Both the position numbers and the translations under genes were made by a program. The notes beneath the pieces are model-generated. The model did no database searches. It saw only the letters and a program-made list of their open reading frames with translations, and was not told the DNA's origin. Shown piece after piece: positions 11,082 to 61,790 of a stretch of DNA of 64,000 bases. Positions within the stretch are counted from its first letter, which is position 1; every line of letters starts with the position of its first letter. This DNA comes from Paragordius varius (lineage: Eukaryota > Animalia > Nematomorpha), in the NCBI GenBank assembly GCA_964247055.1, contig OZ176059.1, forward strand, positions 1,116,001 to 1,180,000, given 5' to 3'.

Positions 11082-12325
11082 CTTTGTTTTTTTGCAATGA
11101 GATTGTATTAGTTTTGTTAAAAAATATTGGATTTTTCCCAAGAATGTCCACAATTATACCATTTTCTTCGGTCATATTAATTTTGTTTTAAATATTTAAG
11201 TTTATATACCTTATAAAGATCTTAATTTTAATTTATAAACATTAAAATTTTATATATATTTTTGATACAGAAAACCCTATATTTGAAAGAATACAGGGCG
11301 CGGTATATTCAGACGGGGAAATATTGATTGATAATGTTGATGATGACATATAGATAATCCGAGTATAATTATTTATAATTTAAAAATAGAACTCAAATCA
11401 GAAACGAAGGATTTAAAACCGAGTATATTTGTTTATATATAATTTTGGAAAGGTAAAAAGGTGATTATATATATAAAAAAAAACATTTAACTTAGAAATT
11501 TTATAAAAATATAACCGATATTATTTCAAGTGAAAAAATAATAGTTTAAAATGTTGCCATTTACCAGCTTAAAAAACTAGTAAGTACCAGGTAAGTAAAA
11601 AAACAATTTTTGTTCAATGAAATTTGTCAGTAAATAGTGGTAAACATAGTACATACTGGATAGTAAAAGCAATATCTTTTTTATTCAATACATCATAGTA
11701 GCAAGTATATACTGGAAAAAACCTAGTAGTTTTAAGTATGTACTAACTTTTCTTCCCCATATTGGCTTATTTCATAATTTTTTCAGTAAGGATTATTTTA
11801 ATTATAAACGAGATTTCAATTTTTAAATTTATATAGAAAAAAATATAGGTAATATTGAATGTTAAAAAACACAATAATTTATTTTAGGGTGTAAATATGA
11901 TTTGTTCGAGGGTGAATTTGAATTGTAAATGGTATATTAAACACATTTTTAGTACCGATATATAATTTTATAAGTAAAAAATATAAAAATATTAAAAAAT
12001 ATGGTTACCCGAACAATAAAGGTCCATTTAACGATGGAAAGTCCAAAACCAGCCAAAGCTCCACACCGACCCGCTAAAGTTTGTGATATGCAAACGGCAA
12101 ACAAAAATCCAATCCAATTGAATATGAATGAGACTAGAAATAAAGAATAAATGATTATAAAAAACAATTTTAATATTATCTTTTTTTTGAGAAAAGTTTA
12201 TAGAAAATTTTATAAATCTAACAGTTTATACTATAAAATATTTAGTAAACAGCAAATTTGTTAACCTTTTTTTTCATAAGCCATAGATCATAGAAATAAA
12301 TGAGACTAAAATGGTTGAAATAAGG

Positions 12326-12361
<36 letters not shown>

Positions 12362-15300
12362 TATAAAAAACACTTTTAATAATTTTATTGGGGATAAATA
12401 ATTTTATGAATATATCAGTTTATTAATACTATATAATATTTAGTAAACGGCAAATTTGTTCATCTTTTTTTCAAGCCATAGATCATAGAAATGTATACTA
12501 AGGTTAAAAACACTTTTAATATCTTTTTTTGAGAGATTTATAAATAATTTCATGATTATAATAGTTTTTTTAATATTATTAAATATTTAATAAACGGCAA
12601 ATTTATTCAGTTTACTATATAAGCCATAGATCATAGAAATAAATGTACTAACATTGTATGAAAAATAAAGTAAAAAAAACGATGTTGTAAAAAAACATAA
12701 AACCACCCGTAAATTGCAAAATCATGTTTTTATAATAAGAAATATTATAAAAAAACTCTTTTATTATAAAATCCCGAAAAAAAATTTGATAAAAAAATTT
12801 GAGATTAAAAAGTTTTTGGCATAATCATTGATGTTACTAAGTTATATGTGCCCCCGATATTTAATTTCATAATATAGTGTGGTTAATATATTAATTAATT
12901 AATGATCATCAATAAAGCTTTTTACTGCTTTAGCCTGAGATTTTCGAAAACAAGTTATAATTAAATTAAGGATAATTTTCATAATCATTAATATTATAAA
13001 ACTGCATTAATAGCGCACATATAGAGATTAGAAGAATTCTATGAAATAAAGGTAAAAGTAACCAATGGTTTAAAAATTTGCTTAAAAGGGGTTTAATAGT
13101 GCTCTATATATACCATTTACAATTCAAATTCACCCTCAAATAATTTATATGTCATAAGATTATAAAATATACCTATATTGTTATATATTTTTAAAAAATA
13201 ATATTTTGTTTAAAATTGAAATAATACTGAAAAATTAATAAACTATGCCATAAAGATATATTTTATATTAATAATGAGTTATATTAGCTGCCCGAAAACA
13301 CATAATTTATTTTTAGGGTGAATTTAAACTGTAAATGGTATAATATATTAATGTTTATTAGTTACAACATTTTAGATTTTTTATTTATTATATAAATATG
13401 TGTTTTCCATGTATTTCTATTATGATATGCTATGATTTTTTTGTAACATTATTATTGTACATACCATATTTAAAACATAAAAAATCAAACATTATACTTA
13501 TTACAAACAAAAAAAATTTAAGCTAAATGTTAAAAAGAAAAAACTGATAAAAAAATAAAATAAAAATTATAAACTAACCCAAGAAACTAACAATAAAAGC
13601 TGTATCCGATCCTATAACATCTCGCGTGGGGACAGTTATGGGATTAGAACTACCAACGACATTTGTTGTGTGTTGAGAAGGTGTATCCAACAAAAAACCG
13701 AATGGAAGGAACTGTAAAATTTTTACATTAAAATTATGATTAGAAAAATAATATATATATGTATAGACACTTTTTGTAAAAGAAGTTAGAAAAAAACATA
13801 TATGGGCAAAAAAGTAAATTTAAATATTAAATGGTCGCGCGAAAAATAACTTTAACATTTAGATTCAAATTGGCGTATCTACCAGACTAAATTAAAGTTA
13901 GGATTTTTAAAAACTACTAAGGAAACAGTCCCAATTTAAATTTATGCTTCTATCCTAATAAAAATTATATAATATCCCAAAATATCTAAGTAAAATGTTT
14001 TGAAAAAAAAGCATGTCAAACTTACTTGGACGCCATTTTTATTTATAAAATTTTTACAATATATCGTACATGTATTTTGAACGGTAAAATTAAAGCTAAT
14101 TTTTTATTTAAATTACATCTAACATTGATAGAAATAGAAAAAGCGGTTTATTTAGCATTATTTTTCAATTTTACCAATGCACACATGTCACGTTGACTAA
14201 ATTCGGTTTTACCTTAAAATAAGTAATATCATTTTTTTTAAATAATTTTTTTTTTAACTATTTATAAAATATACATAGTAGAGCAAAATTTTTACAGTAT
14301 TTTTGATAAAAAGCGATAAAAAAGGAGTCTGTTTGCTATCGCTATCCTTTCTCAAAAATTGTTAAGTATTGTAGATATACCATTTACAATTCAAATTCAC
14401 CCTAAAAATTATGTGTTTTCGGGCTAATATAACTCATCATTAATATAAAATATATTCTTATGGCATAGTTTATAGGTAATTTTTAATCTTAAAAAAACAT
14501 TATTGGTGATTTTAAATTGTTTAAGGGTCAATTTGAACTGTAAATGGTATATAATTATTGTTATAAAAAACATACATACATACCTGATAACGTGAAAAAC
14601 CGGTATTAGAATTATTTCTATGCGTCCGCCCATCCCCCTCACTACTGCTATTAGACTCGATCATATGGATTGGGCGATCTAAAGCTATACATATAATTTA
14701 TATCAAAAATAAAATTTAGGTATTTAAATATATCAAACTAGCTAACAAATTAAACAGTAAAAATTATTATATACACAGAGATACTAATAGTAAGATTAAC
14801 GGAGTTAGCAATAGGCCTACAAAAGTAAAGATAGAAAATGTATTTTACGATATAACTTTTTTAATTATATATAATATATATGCAAAAATGATAGATTATA
14901 AATTTTAGCGTTTTAATTAAAAAATCAAAATAATAATTTAATTATAATAACAACATACGCGTATTAAGTGGAATGTTTGAAAAGTTATGATGTGGTATAA
15001 TGTGTTGAGCTCCTCCATCTATTAAATCACCATGATCACCGTCTCTAACGCCTATTTCAGCCGCTTTGGCTCTTTGAGCCTCCTCATAAGTCGGTAATTC
15101 ATTTACCGCCGTATACGGGGGTGGTATACTAAAATAATCGGGTGGTTTAGGTAAATTATCATTTATTAGTTCACTAGATTGAATAGTTGGATTGTTACCA
15201 TTACTGTTATCTTGTGCAGTATATGATAAAATATTACTATTATTATAATTGGGATTGTAGTTTGTCGTTATATTATTGCTTGGTTGATTATTTGTGTTAT

Positions 15301-15476
15301 GAGGTTGGGATATGATCGGATTGTTGGGTAAAACGGTATTTGGAGTTGTTTCTAAATAATATGTGAAATCATATAAAAAATATACCATTCGTATTATCAA
15401 TCTGAATAGTGGTATCAACTGTGGTAGAATTTTGTTTAGATTGGCTTTTGTCCGAATCAGATCTTAAATCAGTCAT
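9205..15476 (-). CDS. NDFIP: NEDD4 family-interacting protein (NDFIP1/2-like), 321 aa, 6 coding exons
   Basis: Exons 15476-15386, 15351-14959, 14678-14584, 13711-13579, 12133-12009, 9333-9205; phases 1,1,0,1,0; 966 nt. Three PY motifs (PPDY, PPPY, LPTYEEA), GSDTAF..FIFNWIGF..LAGRCGALAGFGLS..KW, and C-terminal LWWFLIILG..KGSIQY. Confidence 0.93.
9368..9638. mobile_element. Family B MITE
   Basis: TATA-CCATTTACAATTCAAATTCACCC ... GGGTGAATTTGAACTGTAAATGG-TATA with 21-bp AACAATTCAAATTCACCCTT(G/A) units. Confidence 0.85.
10201..11932. mobile_element. Family B MITE split by a ~1.4-kb foldback insertion
   Basis: B left half 10201-~10300 and right half ~11760-11932 are colinear with the intact copy 51168-51474; between them lie inverted arms ~10311-10895 and ~11250-11745. 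Confidence 0.75.
12170..12650. repeat. Three diverged ~150-195-bp tandem units in NDFIP intron 4
   Basis: GCCATAGATCATAGAAAT at 12280, 12475 and 12623, each preceded by TAAAC(A/G)GCAAATTT. Confidence 0.7.
13113..13338. mobile_element. Family B MITE
   Basis: CCATTTACAATTCAAATTCACCC ... GTAAATGG with TATA flanks. Confidence 0.8.
13855..14230. repeat. Dispersed repeat family G with terminal hairpin
   Basis: Homologous to ~38646-38960, ~54225-54575, ~55755-56260 and ~56285-56640 (CATCTAACATTGATAGAA; GGGGTATTTAGATACCCC hairpin); no TIR pair seen. Confidence 0.65.
14380..14547. mobile_element. Family B MITE, internally deleted
   Basis: Both TA-CCATTT termini with TATA flanks; 36 nt from the donor of NDFIP exon 3. 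Confidence 0.8.
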
Positions 15477-17284
15477 AACTAACTAGAAAGTGTGAAAATC
15501 AATGTTTATATAAGATAAAGGTATTTCATCATTGCTAATAACAAAATGCACACAGGACATATATTTTGGTAGATAGATGTGTCAGCATTATTAGTACTTT
15601 TGTTTTGGGCCTTACAAGTAATCCAAAAAAATTCGACTGTTTTAGCAATGATTCAAGTAAAATCGCATTTTTATTATTTTAAATAAAAATTTTTGGTGAA
15701 AGCTAATTGTTTCATTCAAAAATTACCATTTCATATAATCATATATGAAAAACATATCTTTTTTATCAAATTTTAAGATTTATCCTTCAAAAATATGAAA
15801 TTTGTAGCCCAGACTAAAATGGGCTGGTTTATTTATAATAAACTTAAAAATACCGATTTTGCGATAATAACTTTTAATATATGGTGGATTATAATCATTT
15901 TTAAAATAAACCTTTTTTAAAAATATTTTATTAAAGTTTTTAAGCGCATAATGTTTTGAAGCATAGGGCAAACGGTATAAAAACACTTTAAGATATTATT
16001 AACACTTTTCTATACGATTATTTGACGCTAAACAAGTTTATCACTTCAAAATTTTATTAAAACATTTGGTCATCAATAATTTTTTGAGAAAACACATTAA
16101 ATTGTAAGATTAAAAATATTTTTGATCTAAATCTGAGTCATAAAAAAAATTCTGAATCATCAAATAATATAAAAAAATTATCTCTTTCGTTTTCACCATG
16201 CCAAAAAACATTGTAAAATACGTTTATCTGCTAAAAATTAAAATTTTTAGCTAAGTATCTTTTTTTCGGAATATTTTTTGATATAACAGAGGTTACTCAC
16301 AAAAAACTTAAAAAGCCGCAAAAAAGGCCGTGCATTATATAATGAAAAATTGCATAGCAGCTGACAATTGCGCAGATATTTATAAACTACATTAAAAAAT
16401 ATAATAAATAATTCAGGACTATAAAAAAGCACTTTTAGGGCTGGCTTCACTGATTTAGCGTATATGAAAAATTATTTTCTCACAATCTTATATTTGCGTT
16501 TATTAAAAAAACTATCACATTTTGAAACTGCGAAGTCACATCTAAAAATTAAAATTTAATTTGAATTTAGTTTTTGCTTTAAAAATAATTGATATTATTC
16601 AAGGATGATTAATAAAGCATATAGCTTTGGCTATCTTATTTTGTTTAGCATATGGTGCACTAACTTTGCGACAAACTAAGAGGTTATATTTATTTTCTAG
16701 ATGCCTCGTATGACCCAAACAAAATTACCATGAGAATTATACAATTATCTATCAGAATATATATTTCATCAGAATATTTTTTGTTTCTGTGTGTGAAGCA
16801 ACTATCACCTTTATTGAATGACTCATGAAGCCCAAAACCGAAAGCGAGAATCCTGATACATTTGTTTATTAAAGGATATATAATTTTTCATATTGCTAAG
16901 CCCCTCGATTTTGCACAATGTGTTATGCAAAATTTTTTACAAAGTGAATTATAAGTTTAAATTTTGGTTAAATCGCCAGAATTATTTTAAAATTTTAATT
17001 TAGATTGATTTGATCAAATAACAGCGGATTTTGGTTAATGATTGGAATTATAATCAGCGTTTTGCATTTATTACAGTTGGGTGCTGTCCAATTTTCAGTT
17101 ATAAGATATGAAAGCTTTTTTTAATATATAAGCCCATGTTTAATAATCATTTCAAAACGCTGACACAGAAAACACCATAAGTCGGTCATTGAAGCGTTAA
17201 CTAACCTAAAAAAGCAATCGATATTTTTTCAATATTTAAAAGTTGACTGTTTATTTCTATTGGGATATAATTCAAATTTTAAAT

Positions 17285-17456
17285 CAGGGGTGTTCAACAC
17301 AAAGGATTTGTGGCTTACATTTGAAAATATAAACATAGTTTGTTGCCAATTGGATGGATTTAATGAGAGTTTAAAGATATATCAATTTTAATATGATTTC
17401 GTATTGCAAATAATAGATTTCCAAATTTTTTGCGAGTCTTATGTGGACCACCCCTG
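17285..17456. mobile_element. hAT-type MITE
   Basis: CAGGGGTGTTCAAC ... GGACCACCCCTG; left flank TTTTAAAT fits an nnnTAnnn target. Confidence 0.7.
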
Positions 17457-18188
17457 TGTTAAAGCAATGGTATTTGGAATTTTTTAGTCTATCTTATAAT
17501 TAAATCATAGATAATAACTTTTACCAATTTATTGCCAAAAACCAGTGAAAATTTTCAAATATTTTTAAATTATTATATATTTAATAAAGAGTTAAATTGC
17601 ATTGTAAATATTTTCCTCCATATGTTTCACACTGTTGCAACCTGTTAAAAGAGGAGCTAAAACATTTCTCCACAAAAAATTACCGCTAATATTTATAGTT
17701 CCTTAATTTCTGTTATTAGATATACTTTTTATTGTTTAATGTTAAAAAAACACTTTGTTAATAAGCGTTATTCATTTATCAGTTACTATTATTTCTAAAA
17801 CGGATTGAAAGGAGTTTTGTTCATTGGTGCTCTAATGACGAATCTAAAATTAACTACCATATTGAGAATTAATTATATAAAAGATAAATAATGTCTAACT
17901 AAATCATTATAATTTTTTTTAAGAAAAGAAAATTTTAAGTTAATCAATACAATTTATTTAATTTACGTTCTATACAGAATGTGGGAGAGAGAGACTCCAA
18001 AATTATTAGATTATTAATATTATAAATTATTAAACTTTTTTTCATTAACGTTAAATCTTATTTTATGATAGAGTATGCATATGGTAACAATCATATATTT
18101 TTTAATATAAGGTTCAAAATATAATTAATATACACAAACCAAAATATATTAGGACTATAATAGTATATATATCTAAATATATATTATT

Positions 18189-20365
18189 ATGAGCTCTAAA
18201 AAACATTCGAAAGATAAATCAAGTCCAGAATCACATCCAATGTGTTATGAAAGCGAAAAAGCCAAAGAAAAGTGCATTCATGATAAAGGTTTGCCACATG
18301 CTTCTTAAAACTATACGGACAAAACGTAAAACCTAAATTAATCCTAGTAATATACTTGATATAATAATATAATTGATTATGTTATTAATATACATCCTAA
18401 TTTTATACTTTGGAACTTAAAACAATGAGTTATTTTAAATTAATAAGATTTAAAAAGTATGGTGTTGTCTTTCGAGAAAAAAATATTTGTCTTTATATTT
18501 TTACGTTTTGTCCGTATAATTTCAATTTTACTGTAAATTACAACAATTTTTTTAAAATTTATAACAAAGTAAAAAAGATATATATACAAAACTACTATTC
18601 TTTTTATTTTTTAAAAAATGAGGATTTGTCCGCTCAATATTTTGATACTAATATAGCTAACATAGACTTAAACATATCCAAATCATTTTGCCTCTATTTA
18701 TGCATAAACACAATTATTATTTATAAGGAAAACAAAATTGCTATGAATGCTCGGGTTTTTTGTTTTTCGATCAAATTAGCTTTGATCATATCCTATGTTT
18801 TTACACTCATAAATAATGTGGCTAATTATACACCATATAAAAATGTAAAATATGTTTAAATTTTTCAGCAAAATTTAAAATAACACTTTCTGAATTAAAA
18901 CGATATAATAAACTAAAATATATTACAAATTAATCTTGAATTTCTTTCTCTGAGGCTTATTACCAATTTTTTATATGTCCCCAGAAAAAAATTATGATTT
19001 CGGTTTCATAAAATCGAATTCAATTTTATTATCGAAACTCTAAATTTTATTGACAAAGAACATTTTATTTTTTTGAATATTTTGTATTCGTTGAATGTTA
19101 GTCGAGTTTAACATATATATATATATATCGTCATATTGATCGCGATTAGGGTTAAAAATATAAGGCTCAATATTCGCATCATTACTATTATTTTTGAGAT
19201 AAAATTAAATTAAATTCTTCAGTTGATTTTTAATTAATATATATATCATAAATTTTATAATTTTTAATTTCTATATGATCCATATTATATTAAAAAATAT
19301 ATTTAAAAATTTGTATTCGTTTTTTTGGCTTATTTTGAGGGCTAAAATTTATTCTAGAAAAAACCTATTGGACATAATGATACCAGTTTAGAAAAATTTA
19401 GATATAGATGTGCCAAATAATATTATATAGAATGTGCTTAAGTTATCCTTATTTAAGTGTCTCAACCTCAACTTACATCGAGGTGGATTATAAAAATGTA
19501 AAAGACAAAGGGTTATGACGCTAGATTGGCCTGATTTGTAATAATTATTGGTTATTATTTAAATTTGATAATTTTGTAAAAGATGTCAAAATAATAATGT
19601 ATAATCCACAAAAATCTTGGTTTATTGATTTTGTTTATATGTGTCTCCATATACCATTTGCACTTCAAGAGTGTCCTTAAAATTTCAAGTTCGTCCTTAA
19701 AATTTTTATATTTTGATACCATAACTTTTGCATGTATTTTTTAATTTTATTATTTTTTAACCTAATTTTCTTGGTTTATTATATATTTATTCATTAGAAA
19801 AAAAATATTCAAAAACCACATTTTTTATTTCAAACTAATTTTTTTTTGCAATTTAACAAAATTATTAACTTTTGAATGTTTTCAATGTAAAATTGTGAAT
19901 AATAACCCAAAAAACTTATATATTATTAAATTACGTGTTAAAATCTGATAAATATCCAAAATAATTTCAAGAAATTAATAATATACGGTTTTTCAAGGAT
20001 TAAAAGTTGATATTGATTTAAAATATATCTTTAATGATAGAAAATAGGTTCAAAACGATAAAATAGATGAATGATATCCGATTTTAAGGTTTAAACAAAA
20101 CAAAAATGTTAAAGGGCCAACTTGAAATGTTCAACCACCAACTTGAGGTGTTCAAGGACACTTTTGAAGTGCAAACGGTATATTAAGCTAGGCAATATCT
20201 GTCGGTATTATATCCCCTGAGACCAATCATTTTATTTGGCCTGTCAAAATTTTTTGGTACGTACTACTTTAAACTATATATTAAATAATAGGTGAAGCAA
20301 ATTGTAAAAAGATGATAGAAGCTTATCTCAAATGTATGCGTGATATGGAAAAAAAATCCCACTAA
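18189..20365 (+). CDS. COX17: COX17-like twin-Cx9C mitochondrial intermembrane-space protein, 57 aa, lacking the Cys-Cys copper site
   Basis: Exons 18189-18288 and 20292-20365 (phase 1, GT-AG) give MSSKKHSKDKSSPESHPMCYESEKAKEKCIHDKGEANCKKMIEAYLKCMRDMEKKSH; aligns without gaps to human COX17 [32 protein letters not shown] (Cx9C-x8-Cx9C). Too short for the ORF track. Confidence 0.85.
19654..20178. mobile_element. Family A MITE in the COX17-like intron
   Basis: TATA-CCATTTGCACTTCAAGAGTGTCC ... GAAGTGCAAACGG-TATA. Confidence 0.85.
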
Positions 20366-20500: not shown

Positions 20501-22381
20501 CTAGCTGTCCCTGTCACGCTTAGCTGTGATATAGTCGCACCTATAATTATAATTAAAAATTTGCAATAAATAGAGCTAATGGAGATAAAATAAAAAACGT
20601 ATTTAATAAAAAAATATCTTTAATTTTTCTTTTACGGGTTTTTGCATAGGCTCAAATATTGTTTACTCGAAATTGACCATGTTTAAAATGTCCCTTATTA
20701 ACGTTAATATTCAACTATTATTGGATTTAATTTGAGATTTTCGTTTTACGAAATCATGGTTAATAGTTCTATTTTGAAATTGTGTTTACACATCTCGGAT
20801 CAAGGGATAAAAAAAGTAAATTATTTGTGGTCCCTTTTTTAAGGAAAGAATGATAGACGAATTCGCCAGATATGTATTTAACTGAACTCGTATGGCTTTT
20901 TAAGTTTTTTAATCGGCTCCAAAACAACGCCATTTTTGTATGGCATCTCAGTTTTAAACCGGTAGACCCCACCCATAGATCCATATGGAAAAGCGCTGAG
21001 TTAATGCCTTTATAGAGCAAATATTTAGAATCATCTTTGATACCATCATCTCATGGGTATTCGAAAAAACAACACTTAATCGTTATATGATGGCGTATTT
21101 TAGGGGCAAAAAGGCCCCAAATTAACGGCTAATTAAAAAACGCCTGACCATTTTTATCTAGTTACAGGTAATATTTCAAGCTTTTAATGAACTCATATGG
21201 CTTCATAAATTTTCTGTAAATTAGCTCCAAAATAACGCAATTTCCTATAGTGGCGCAGTTTTTCGGGTAGCCCCTTATCCAGGGGCAGGTATAAAAAAGC
21301 GTAAAGCAAAATTTTGCCTTTATATGGGGAATATCTGGAATTATCATTCATTCCATATTTTCTTTATAGTTTATGGAAAAATGGCTTCAAAACTAAATAA
21401 TAGTTCAATGATAGCGTTTTAGGGCTTAAAGGGCCTATTTAACCGCTAATATAAAAGAACCGCTCCACTTAAATTTTTGGCTTTTTACAGGTAATATTTC
21501 AGGCCCTTAAAAAACTTATATGGCTTGATAAGTTTTCTGAAAAGTAACACCTAAACAAGGCAATTTTTATATGGTGGCACAGTTTTAGGCTGGTAGCTTC
21601 CTACCCAAAGACTGAGACAAAAAAGCACTTAAAATTTTTGACCTTTTAAGAATACCTGGAATCGAAAGATTCCATATGCTCTTATTAGTTTTTTAAAAAT
21701 TGCCTCAAAATTGAAAAATCATTCTATGGTGGCGCATTTTTCAGGGCGTGAAGGGCCTAATTAACGGCTAATTTTAAAAAACAGAGCGATCTAAATTTTT
21801 GCCTTGTTACGGGTAATATCATTGATAGGTTTTCTGATATTTAGCCCCAAAGGCACGCTGATGGGACGGGTCAGTTTGTAGCGGGTATCTCCTTACCCAG
21901 CAGCTATGAAAAAAAACGCTTGACTAAAATTTTTGCCTTTTAACAGGGAATACCGGAAATCCTTATTAAATTTTTACGGTCTCATACTTTGGGCAAAAAA
22001 TAGATTCAAAAAATTATTTTTGGGGCTTTGTTTTTTTTGAAAAAAATGGCATTTTACAGGGGGAGCGAGTAAAAAGAGGGCCTAAATTAAAAAAGCGAGC
22101 CGATTATGTTCGGCGCAATCGAAAATAAGTTAACAAAAATCATATTTGAATTCAAATGGTCCAACACGTTTTCGGAAAAATTGTCTCATAGACACGATTT
22201 TTATGGACTTTTGTTTTTTAAAAAAACCCGTTAGAAATGGGGGCCTAATTCAAAAAAACAGCGAACCTATTATCAGGGCATCCATTAATAATTATATTTT
22301 TTCGACATTTGGATTTGAATGGGTCTACCGGTTTTCCGGATACAGATCACAAAGCCAGCATTTTCCAATTTTATATATAGG
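20501..22381 (-). mobile_element. Non-autonomous Helitron with internal ~320-bp tandem units
   Basis: Minus strand: A|CCTATATA 5' end, hairpin (TCACAGC..GCGTGA) then CTAG|T 3' end; GGCC..TTAAC(G/C)GCTAAT recurs at ~21113, 21434, 21753; homologous to 58890-60347. Confidence 0.75.
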
Positions 22382-31472: not shown

Positions 31473-32087
31473 CTAATAATTAAATATTTTCGTCACACCT
31501 CTATAAATAAATATACCGTTTAAGTCAAATATCAATGTTCTATTCCTGTATTTCCTTGAAAGTTTTTTCCAGCCTATTATGTCCCGAATTTCTGCACGGT
31601 GGGCCCCGAAGTCAATTAATGCTTGTAAATGTGTAATTTCTGAAATGTTTAACGAATGAATACTATTGTCATCCAAAATTATATTTTTAATAGATTGATT
31701 ATATGCAGCGCGTGTAAAATCAACGGATCTAATATTACAATCAACTATTTCAAGGGATTTTAAATGCGCCCATTTCTCAAACGGTTGCAAGTCTGTCAAC
31801 CCCGAAACTAATTTTAAATTCAATTTTTCCAAATTATTTTCTTTTTTAAAAATGTCGGGAATGACCCTACAATGCCTGAGGGTCAAAGATGTTAGATTTT
31901 TAGGGAAAGATTGTGCCGAATTAATAATGGTTGTATTTGAAAGCGTTCTGCCTTCTATGGTTAAGGAGCGAATGTTAGGGTATTTTCGTAATATATCAGA
32001 AAAATCATAATGATCTTCCTCCACGTGCAAAATCACTTCTTTCGCGTTTGAATTTTTTGGAGCAGAAGTATTTGTGTATGATTCCAC
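31473..32087 (-). CDS. Leucine-rich-repeat protein (204-aa ORF; true start unresolved)
   Basis: LxxLxL repeats: IRSLTIE, LTSLTLRHC, LEKLNLK, LKSLEIVDCNI, IKNIILDDNSI. ORF begins at GTG right after an AG (possible acceptor); an upstream ATG at 32127 is one base out of frame. Confidence 0.65.
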   Translation of the reverse strand: MESYTNTSAPKNSNAKEVILHVEEDHYDFSDILRKYPNIRSLTIEGRTLSNTTIINSAQSFPKNLTSLTLRHCRVIPDIFKKENNLEKLNLKLVSGLTDLQPFEKWAHLKSLEIVDCNIRSVDFTRAAYNQSIKNIILDDNSIHSLNISEITHLQALIDFGAHRAEIRDIIGWKKLSRKYRNRTLIFDLNGIFIYRGVTKIFNY

Positions 32088-60359: not shown

Positions 60360-61790
60360 CCATTTTTCATGCAAAAACATCATTTTTTCAAGCAAACGCA
60401 CCATTTTTTCAAGCAAAGGCAACAATTTTTCAAGCAAATGCAACATTTTTTCAAGCAAAGACAACATTTTTTCAAGCAAACGCAACATTTTTTCAAGCAA
60501 ACGCAACATTTTTTCAACCAAATACAACATTTTTTCATCCAAACGCAACATTTTTTCAACCAAAGACAACATTTTTTCAAGCAAAAACAACACTTTTTTT
60601 AACATTACAAAGAATTACTATTTATTGTTAATTATAAATTATTTATTAAATTTTAAGTTAATGTAATTTATTTTTAGCGTTAAATTATGATTTTTATCGT
60701 TTTATCAGCAATATTTGATGGTAAAATTGATTTTCAAACATTTTGATTTTGCCCATAAATTGCCTTATTTATTTATATTAATTATATTTTTCTTTTACAA
60801 TTTTAGTTTCGCCTATAATCAATTTATATAATTTTCACTTCAAGAGTGTCTTTGTAAGTTTAAAGTTGTCCTTCACTTTGTTTTTAACTTTTATTAATTA
60901 AATCGAAAATAATTTATCTATTTTATTGTTTTTAACCTATTTTCTATTATTTAACATAAATTTTAAATCGATATCAACTTTTAATCTTAGAGAAACCGTA
61001 TATTAATTAATAATTTTAGATATTTATAACACGAAAAAAATATATGAGTTTTCTGGGTTATTAGAAATTTTTCATTAAAAACATTAAAAGTTAATAATTT
61101 TGTTCAATTAAAAAAAATATTTTGAAATAAAAAAGTGGTTTTTCAAAAAATTTTAAATGGATAAATACATAATAAATAAAGAAAATTAGGTTAATAAATA
61201 ATAATATTAAAAAATAAATGCAAAAATTAGGGTAAAACAAAATTTATAAATTTTAAGACCAACTTAAAGAGTTCAAGGATCAACTTGAAATGTTCAAGGA
61301 CCAACTTGAAGTGTTCAAGGACACTCTTGAAGTGCAAATTAAATAAATTGATTATAGGCGAAACTAAAATTGTAAAAGAAAAATATAATTAATATAAATA
61401 AATAGGGCAATTTATGGGCAAAATCAAAATGTTTGAAAATCAATTTTACCATCAAATATTGCTGATAAAACGATAAAAATCATAATTTAACGCTAAAAAT
61501 AAATTACATTAACTTAAAATTTAATAAATAATTTATAATTAACAATAAATAGTAATTCTTTGTAATGTTAAAAAAAGTGTTGTTTTTGCTTGAAAAAATG
61601 TTGTCTTTGGTTGAAAAAATGTTGCGTTTGGATGAAAAAATGTTGTATTTGGTTGAAAAAATGTTGCGTTTGCTTGAAAAAATGTTGCGTTTGCTTGAAA
61701 AAATGTTGCGTTTGCTTGAAAAAATGTTGCCTTTGCTTGAAAAAATGTTGCGTTTGCTTGAAAAAATGATGTTTTTGCATGAAAAATGGT
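60360..61790. mobile_element. Family C foldback element with ~470-bp TIRs enclosing a family A MITE
   Basis: TATA-CCATTTTTCATGC ... GCATGAAAAATGG-TATA; arms have 11 (left) and 10 (right) 21-bp CATTTTTTCAAGCAAACGCAA units plus a ~225-bp inner domain that differs at only a couple of positions. Confidence 0.9.
60830..61340. mobile_element. Family A MITE forming the loop of the foldback
   Basis: CACTTCAAGAGTGTC ... GACACTCTTGAAGTGCAAA with family A body. Confidence 0.8.

Follow-up and report, generated by a model that had tools for sequence, protein, structure and literature searches.

A two-exon gene in a 64,000-nucleotide stretch of the Paragordius varius genome (contig 10:1116001-1180000; hereafter the window) is most likely an old duplicate of the animal's own COX17, judging from its sequence. 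COX17 (PF05051) is the chaperone that carries Cu(I) to SCO1/SCO2 and COX11 in the mitochondrial intermembrane space. We consider it probable that the duplicate arose at the DNA level and has been kept as a protein-coding gene, and that its product is a CHCH protein that would be imported by MIA40 and would be blind to copper. What appears to be new is a COX17-derived CHCH protein that lacks the defining copper motif; our survey of the literature (full text) found no CC-less COX17 paralogue described in animals.

The COX17-like gene lies on the plus strand and comprises a 57-codon frame joined across a phase-1 GT-AG intron. Re-reading of the letters bore out the coordinates, the two exons, the four cysteines and the ESHPMC stretch that had been reported in an earlier, sequence-only reading of this DNA. 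The parts of the gene, the two mobile-element-like insertions in its intron and a candidate poly(A) signal are as follows.

18189..18288, plus strand: exon 1, with the ATG, a Lys/Ser-rich tail, HPMC, the first Cx9C helix (C19-C29) and the first base of a split Gly codon.
18234..18245, plus strand: position of the copper motif, reading His16-Pro17-Met18-Cys19 instead of the CCxC of canonical COX17.
18289..20291, plus strand: phase-1 GT-AG intron of 2003 nt.
18305..18525, no strand given: MITE-like element 1, with 27-nt terminal inverted repeats, inside the COX17-like intron.
19649..20183, no strand given: MITE-like element 2, with 33-nt terminal inverted repeats, inside the COX17-like intron.
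20292..20365, plus strand: exon 2, opening with the two bases that complete the Gly codon, then EAN, the second Cx9C helix (C39-C49, CKKMIEAYLKCM) and a short basic stretch before the TAA.
20565..20570, plus strand: possible poly(A) signal, the first AATAAA past the stop, 200 nt downstream; weak evidence in AT-rich DNA.

Exon 1 contributes 33 codons (MSSKKHSKDKSSPESHPMCYESEKAKEKCIHDK) and a single G at 18288, with the ATG at 18189 and ESHPMC encoded at 18228-18245. The intron begins with GT at 18289-90 and ends with AG at 20290-91, the junction codon G|GT encodes Gly, and after the acceptor exon 2 consists of GT, EANCKKMIEAYLKCMRDMEKKSH and TAA, ending at 20365. Conceptual translation places cysteines at positions 19, 29, 39 and 49 (Cx9C-x8-Cx9C) and reveals no presequence. 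The eight-residue loop between the second and third cysteines reads IHDKGEAN, compared to IITKGEAN in the canonical copy described below. The window is very AT-rich (GC 0.21-0.32); the two exons have GC contents of 0.33 and 0.31, local real coding sequence ranges from 0.32 to 0.37, and the intron and upstream flank are at 0.23. An NDFIP-type gene (PF10176, NEDD4_Bsd2; 11952-12167 + 14945-15418, minus strand), with PPxY motifs in its upstream exon, is oriented head-to-head with the COX17-like gene, some 2.8 kb away from the ATG of the latter. Elsewhere in the window, a 204-aa open frame at 31476-32087 on the minus strand contains leucine-rich repeats (weak LRR_4 and LRR_8 matches), and a 21-nt tandem repeat forms two arrays in inverted orientation roughly 970 bp apart, at 60363-60599 (~11 copies) and 61572-61786 (~10 copies). 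These arrays resemble the subterminal repeats of a mobile element, and their translation yields CCVCLKK runs that mimic Cys motifs.

The earlier reading had allowed that this gene might be the only COX17 copy in the animal, in which case the copper pathway to cytochrome c oxidase would have been remodelled. We searched the assembly (110.6 Mb, 44 contigs) for further copies of COX17 and for SCO, COX11 and COX19. A six-frame PF05051 scan returned two loci, the COX17-like gene and a full-length COX17 on contig 1 that carries KPCCAC and scores 68-69 bits. Scans of the tblastn type with each exon found no third copy in the genome, and the sole match to exon 2 was the canonical COX17. The C-terminal part of the canonical protein, which follows a seven-residue IFFVTVG insert, reads EANCKYLIEAHRKCMLDHGFSI. 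This insert is encoded by a stop-free 21-nt GT...AG segment, a probable intron (local 1571-1591; contig 1, about 9630428-9630448) with TAAC 7 nt before the AG. The segment follows AAAG, lies inside the Gly codon of K-G-E, and its removal restores the spacing of 10/10 other aligned COX17 sequences; if retained, it would add the seven hydrophobic residues to the hairpin loop. An intact DPH3/CSL zinc-finger ORF (PF05207, 93 bits) starts one base past the canonical COX17 stop (TAA-A-ATG, local 1660-1666). The sequence suggests that canonical COX17 and DPH3 are carried on a bicistronic transcript. A DPH3 relic behind the COX17-like gene, a sign that the bicistron had been copied whole, was looked for and not found.

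The remaining components of the pathway were also recovered. SCO1 (163 bits) is an intronless 281-aa ORF whose best match is an unnamed protein of the horsehair worm Gordionus sp. (62% identity, E 1e-110), followed by matches at 1e-86 and about 1e-72. COX11 was found, together with a COX19-like twin Cx9C ORF (contig 3:3629202-3630303) and an ORF with the MIA40/CHCHD4 signature of SCPC followed by twin Cx9C (contig 6:4060421-4061525, ORF about 4060750-4061050). Because canonical COX17 is accompanied by SCO1, COX11, the COX19-like gene and MIA40, a remodelled pathway served by a single, altered COX17 is excluded. Instead, the standard copper route to cytochrome oxidase looks complete in this genome, as does the set of genes for intermembrane-space import and copper assembly.

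Both COX17 copies have their interruption within the Gly codon of KG|E, in phase 1; it measures 2003 nt in the COX17-like gene and 21 nt in the canonical one. Among the other genes compared, Apis COX17 has a phase-2 split in the Cys-2 codon, five codons upstream of the Gly site, Caenorhabditis remanei COX17 has a phase-0 split after ETKR, and damselfly COX17 is without an intron. Because both copies share an intron codon and phase that are absent from Apis, C. remanei and damselfly, the shared site points to duplication at the DNA level rather than a retrocopy. It is also consistent with a duplication that arose in a lineage already having the KG|E intron.

To compare the copies we used 37 gap-free aligned codons, with counts pooled over both exons. 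The COX17-like and canonical sequences are identical at 18/37 amino acids and 63/111 nucleotides. Between them, pS was 0.87 (saturated) versus a pN of 0.35, values that rest on ~18 synonymous sites and, as a pairwise pS/pN, cannot place constraint on one branch. We also simulated neutral evolution of the canonical pieces under local base composition to 48/111 nucleotide differences in 20,000 trials. Under neutral drift, the frame was open in 7% of trials, the four cysteines were kept in 0.09%, and both in 0.025%. The expected identity was 9.2 +/- 1.9 residues compared to the 18/37 observed, and 18 was never reached. In 0.7% of cases, a random sequence of local composition would stay free of stops over 56 codons. 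Because drift rarely keeps both the frame and the cysteines, identity lies above the neutral expectation, and the exons have coding-type GC, these data argue, for a small sample, that purifying selection has acted on the COX17-like copy through most of its existence.

A gene silenced recently would look identical in sequence, and it is conceivable, albeit unlikely, that the copy is a non-functional relic, long constrained and now unexpressed or only recently silenced, with its open frame a leftover. Several features lean this way. COX17 signature residues have been lost. The intron is swollen by two MITEs that together make up at least 756 nt of its 2003 nt, one of which (18305-18525) begins 16 nt from the splice donor. 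Both belong to high-copy dispersed families, with 2192 first-look genome candidates for 18305-18525 (40 scored, 79-89% identical) and 1396 for 19649-20183 (40 scored, 81-84% identical). The donor, GTTTGC, is off the usual consensus. Furthermore, no orthologue came to light: a word search with the 43-aa open frame 18177-18305 that contains exon 1 found no protein sharing three 5-residue words, which speaks to close relatives only, and an exon-1 search of 1.84 billion proteins listed nothing, which at 33 aa rules out close relatives only. By contrast, synonymous sites are saturated, yet the frame, the four cysteines, the GT/AG boundaries and the coding-type GC are all intact, with a joint drift chance of ~0.025%, and the similar donor GTTTAC is used by COX11 in the same genome. 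A relic would fit these data only if it had died very recently, and we favor a gene that is still maintained.

We next consider what the COX17-like copy has kept and what it has changed. Of the 27 columns with the same residue in ten or more of the 11 canonical COX17 sequences, 16 are altered, among them the entire KPCCA..P.TK..RD block and the C-terminal GF. The four cysteines, E21, the E of GE, I-E-A and the split Gly are kept. The changes comprise K-P-C-C-A, P to Y, T to S, K to E, R to K, D to E, L to M, H to Y and the C-terminal G-F. KPCCAC is present in every canonical COX17 aligned; the COX17-like copy has no CCxC, and HPMC stands for CCAC. This pattern suggests that the determinants of the fold have been kept and that the whole conserved surface around the copper site has been remodelled, beyond the two ligands. 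A copy freed from chaperone duty would account for it better than would a ligand swap or a decoy docking on SCO1/COX11. The sequence-only reading had proposed a copper-blind paralogue, possibly acting as a decoy. Paralogy stands, with a canonical KPCCAC copy elsewhere in the genome and a non-neutral pattern of divergence; a decoy that still docks on SCO1/COX11 is weakened because 16/27 near-invariant columns are changed, the copper-site block and GF among them.

That earlier reading had also raised a substitute metal site, in which the product is still a copper chaperone and His16 and Met18 (H-P-M before C19) form a thioether/imidazole Cu(I) site replacing the thiolate pair. His and Met are known Cu(I) ligands in other proteins, and here they sit exactly at the first Cys and the x of CCxC. 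However, K, P, P32, T34 and K35 are changed as well, R38 and D39 have conservative replacements, the C-terminal GF is gone, and the searches recovered no orthologue in which H and M could be compared. According to a review, every COX17 cysteine is conserved between yeast and human, and COX17 cannot work without those of CCXC: the functional form has its twin Cx9C oxidised and one Cu(I) bound by the adjacent pair, and yeast in which any CCXC cysteine is replaced has a non-functioning oxidase complex (PMC7909247). Collectively, these points make a substitute Cu(I) site improbable, and loss of the copper site remains the reading that we prefer.

An error in the gene model, with another first exon supplying CCxC and the product an ordinary COX17 isoform, would undo this reading, as had been recognized from the outset, and we regard it as very improbable: CCxC is encoded nowhere in 15000-20300, in any frame of the two strands, its one occurrence on the plus strand of 1-20291 stands isolated and flanked by stops at 2082, the PF05051 scan has no further match on contig 10, and an in-frame TAA lies 4 codons upstream of the ATG (18174-76). 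Moreover, there is no AG in the 9 nt before the C19 codon (TGT), and an alternative acceptor cannot change H-P-M; because of this, any product using this helix would carry H-P-M.

The assignment to COX17 rather than to another twin-Cx9C family was examined with each exon taken separately. Exon 2 alone matched the Pfam COX17 profile (PF05051) with 22.0 bits and an E of 2e-4, compared to a curated cut-off of 24.9, and ranked COX17 above CX9C (PF16860; 16.3 bits); exon 1 alone gave no match. Against the canonical COX17 of the same genome, exon 2 was identical at 12/17 residues (pairwise E 3e-7). Exon 1 aligned in register with helix 1 (6/15 identical, 11/15 positive, E 0.011) and ended exactly at the canonical intron position. 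In a small BLASTP panel, the best partner of exon 2 was the COX17 of the same genome (33 bits), followed by bee, damselfly and nematode COX17 (28-30 bits); the COX19-like ORF of the genome gave 19 bits, off register, and MIA40 and two other CHCH ORFs of the genome gave no match. The seven residues KGEANCK are identical in the two copies. The canonical COX17, used as the query of a word search, drew 45 ordinary COX17 proteins (bees best, 53%), with no nematomorph COX17 and no CC-less protein among them. By these comparisons, the COX17-like gene is a paralogue of the canonical COX17. Closer similarity to another Cx9C family, the other outcome that would have told against the earlier reading, was not observed. 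A member of another twin-Cx9C family (COX19, COX23/CHCHD7, CMC4 or NDUFA8-like; CHCH PF06747, CX9C PF16860) that merely resembles COX17 is scarcely to be expected. In its favor stands a single-sequence PDB-chain search, which gave nothing for exon 1 and, for exon 2, weak matches to CHCHD5 and NDUFA8 with COX17 absent among them, none significant (E above 1). Against it, the Pfam profile puts COX17 first, the only genomic match to exon 2 is canonical COX17, the other CHCH ORFs give no in-register match, and the two copies have KGEANCK, the eight-residue loop and the intron site and phase in common.

From these features we infer that the gene is expressed, how its product is imported and its disulfides are paired, that it does not bind copper, and what it might do. 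The sequence has the hallmarks of a MIA40 substrate: two Cx9C motifs, no presequence and a MIA40 ORF in the same genome. The C-K-K-M-I-E-A-Y stretch of exon 2 also fits the ITS/MISS pattern reported by Sideris et al. 2009. For proteins with a twin Cx9C, import and trapping by the MIA40 relay depend on an internal amphipathic signal beside the docking Cys (PMC8069373, PMC5405047). Lacking a presequence, the 57-aa product would reach the intermembrane space via the MIA40 disulfide relay encoded by the genome and would be kept there as a hairpin closed by the disulfides C19-C49 and C29-C39. Since it is devoid of the canonical digonal Cu(I) site, it would be a small CHCH protein with a structural, assembly or regulatory role and not a copper donor, and copper delivery to cytochrome oxidase would be left to canonical COX17, SCO1 and COX11. 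A more specific proposal, which we put forward tentatively and consider possible rather than likely, is that the duplication split a copper-independent job of COX17, in cristae/MICOS organisation or in redox control of SCO1/COX11, from copper delivery.

Comparison with known systems places the predicted protein close to, and apart from, its parent. Like COX17, it has the twin Cx9C, the 8-residue loop, the IEA..C of helix 2, a small size and no presequence. Unlike COX17, it is without the CC of CCxC, the flanking K-P-..-A, P, T and K, and the C-terminal GF. COX19 and COX23/CHCHD7, which are related to COX17, are likewise small intermembrane-space CHCH proteins and are cytochrome oxidase biogenesis factors without CCxC; however, sequence, loop length and gene structure put the COX17-like gene with COX17. 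The TcCox17-like protein of trypanosomatids is, by its preprint description, a lineage-restricted protein with a Cox17-like domain that exists beside a canonical Cox17 (bioRxiv 10.1101/2024.04.12.589278). It belongs to an unrelated lineage and has an independent origin, and the likeness is one of description. Finally, the COX17-like gene resembles pseudoenzymes, in that selection appears to have preserved a duplicate stripped of the residues to which its parent owes its chemistry. It differs from them in descending from a metallochaperone, where their parents are enzymes, and in the small size of its product (57 aa).

For annotation, the gene is of a kind that would be missed: gene finders and Pfam cut-offs would pass over a 57-aa gene in two exons, and COX17 copy counts in this little-studied phylum would be misleading if the COX17-like gene were called a second chaperone. 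The picture of copper delivery to cytochrome oxidase is unchanged, because the standard pathway is intact in the genome. The product would provide a small, easily expressed protein for asking which properties of COX17, among them import, folding and partner binding, need copper. More broadly, a copy long kept by selection without CCxC would indicate that the COX17 scaffold is usable for a copper-independent role. If the duplication did indeed separate such a role from copper delivery, the animal carries a natural separation-of-function allele, and the copper-less copy would reveal the non-copper work of COX17.
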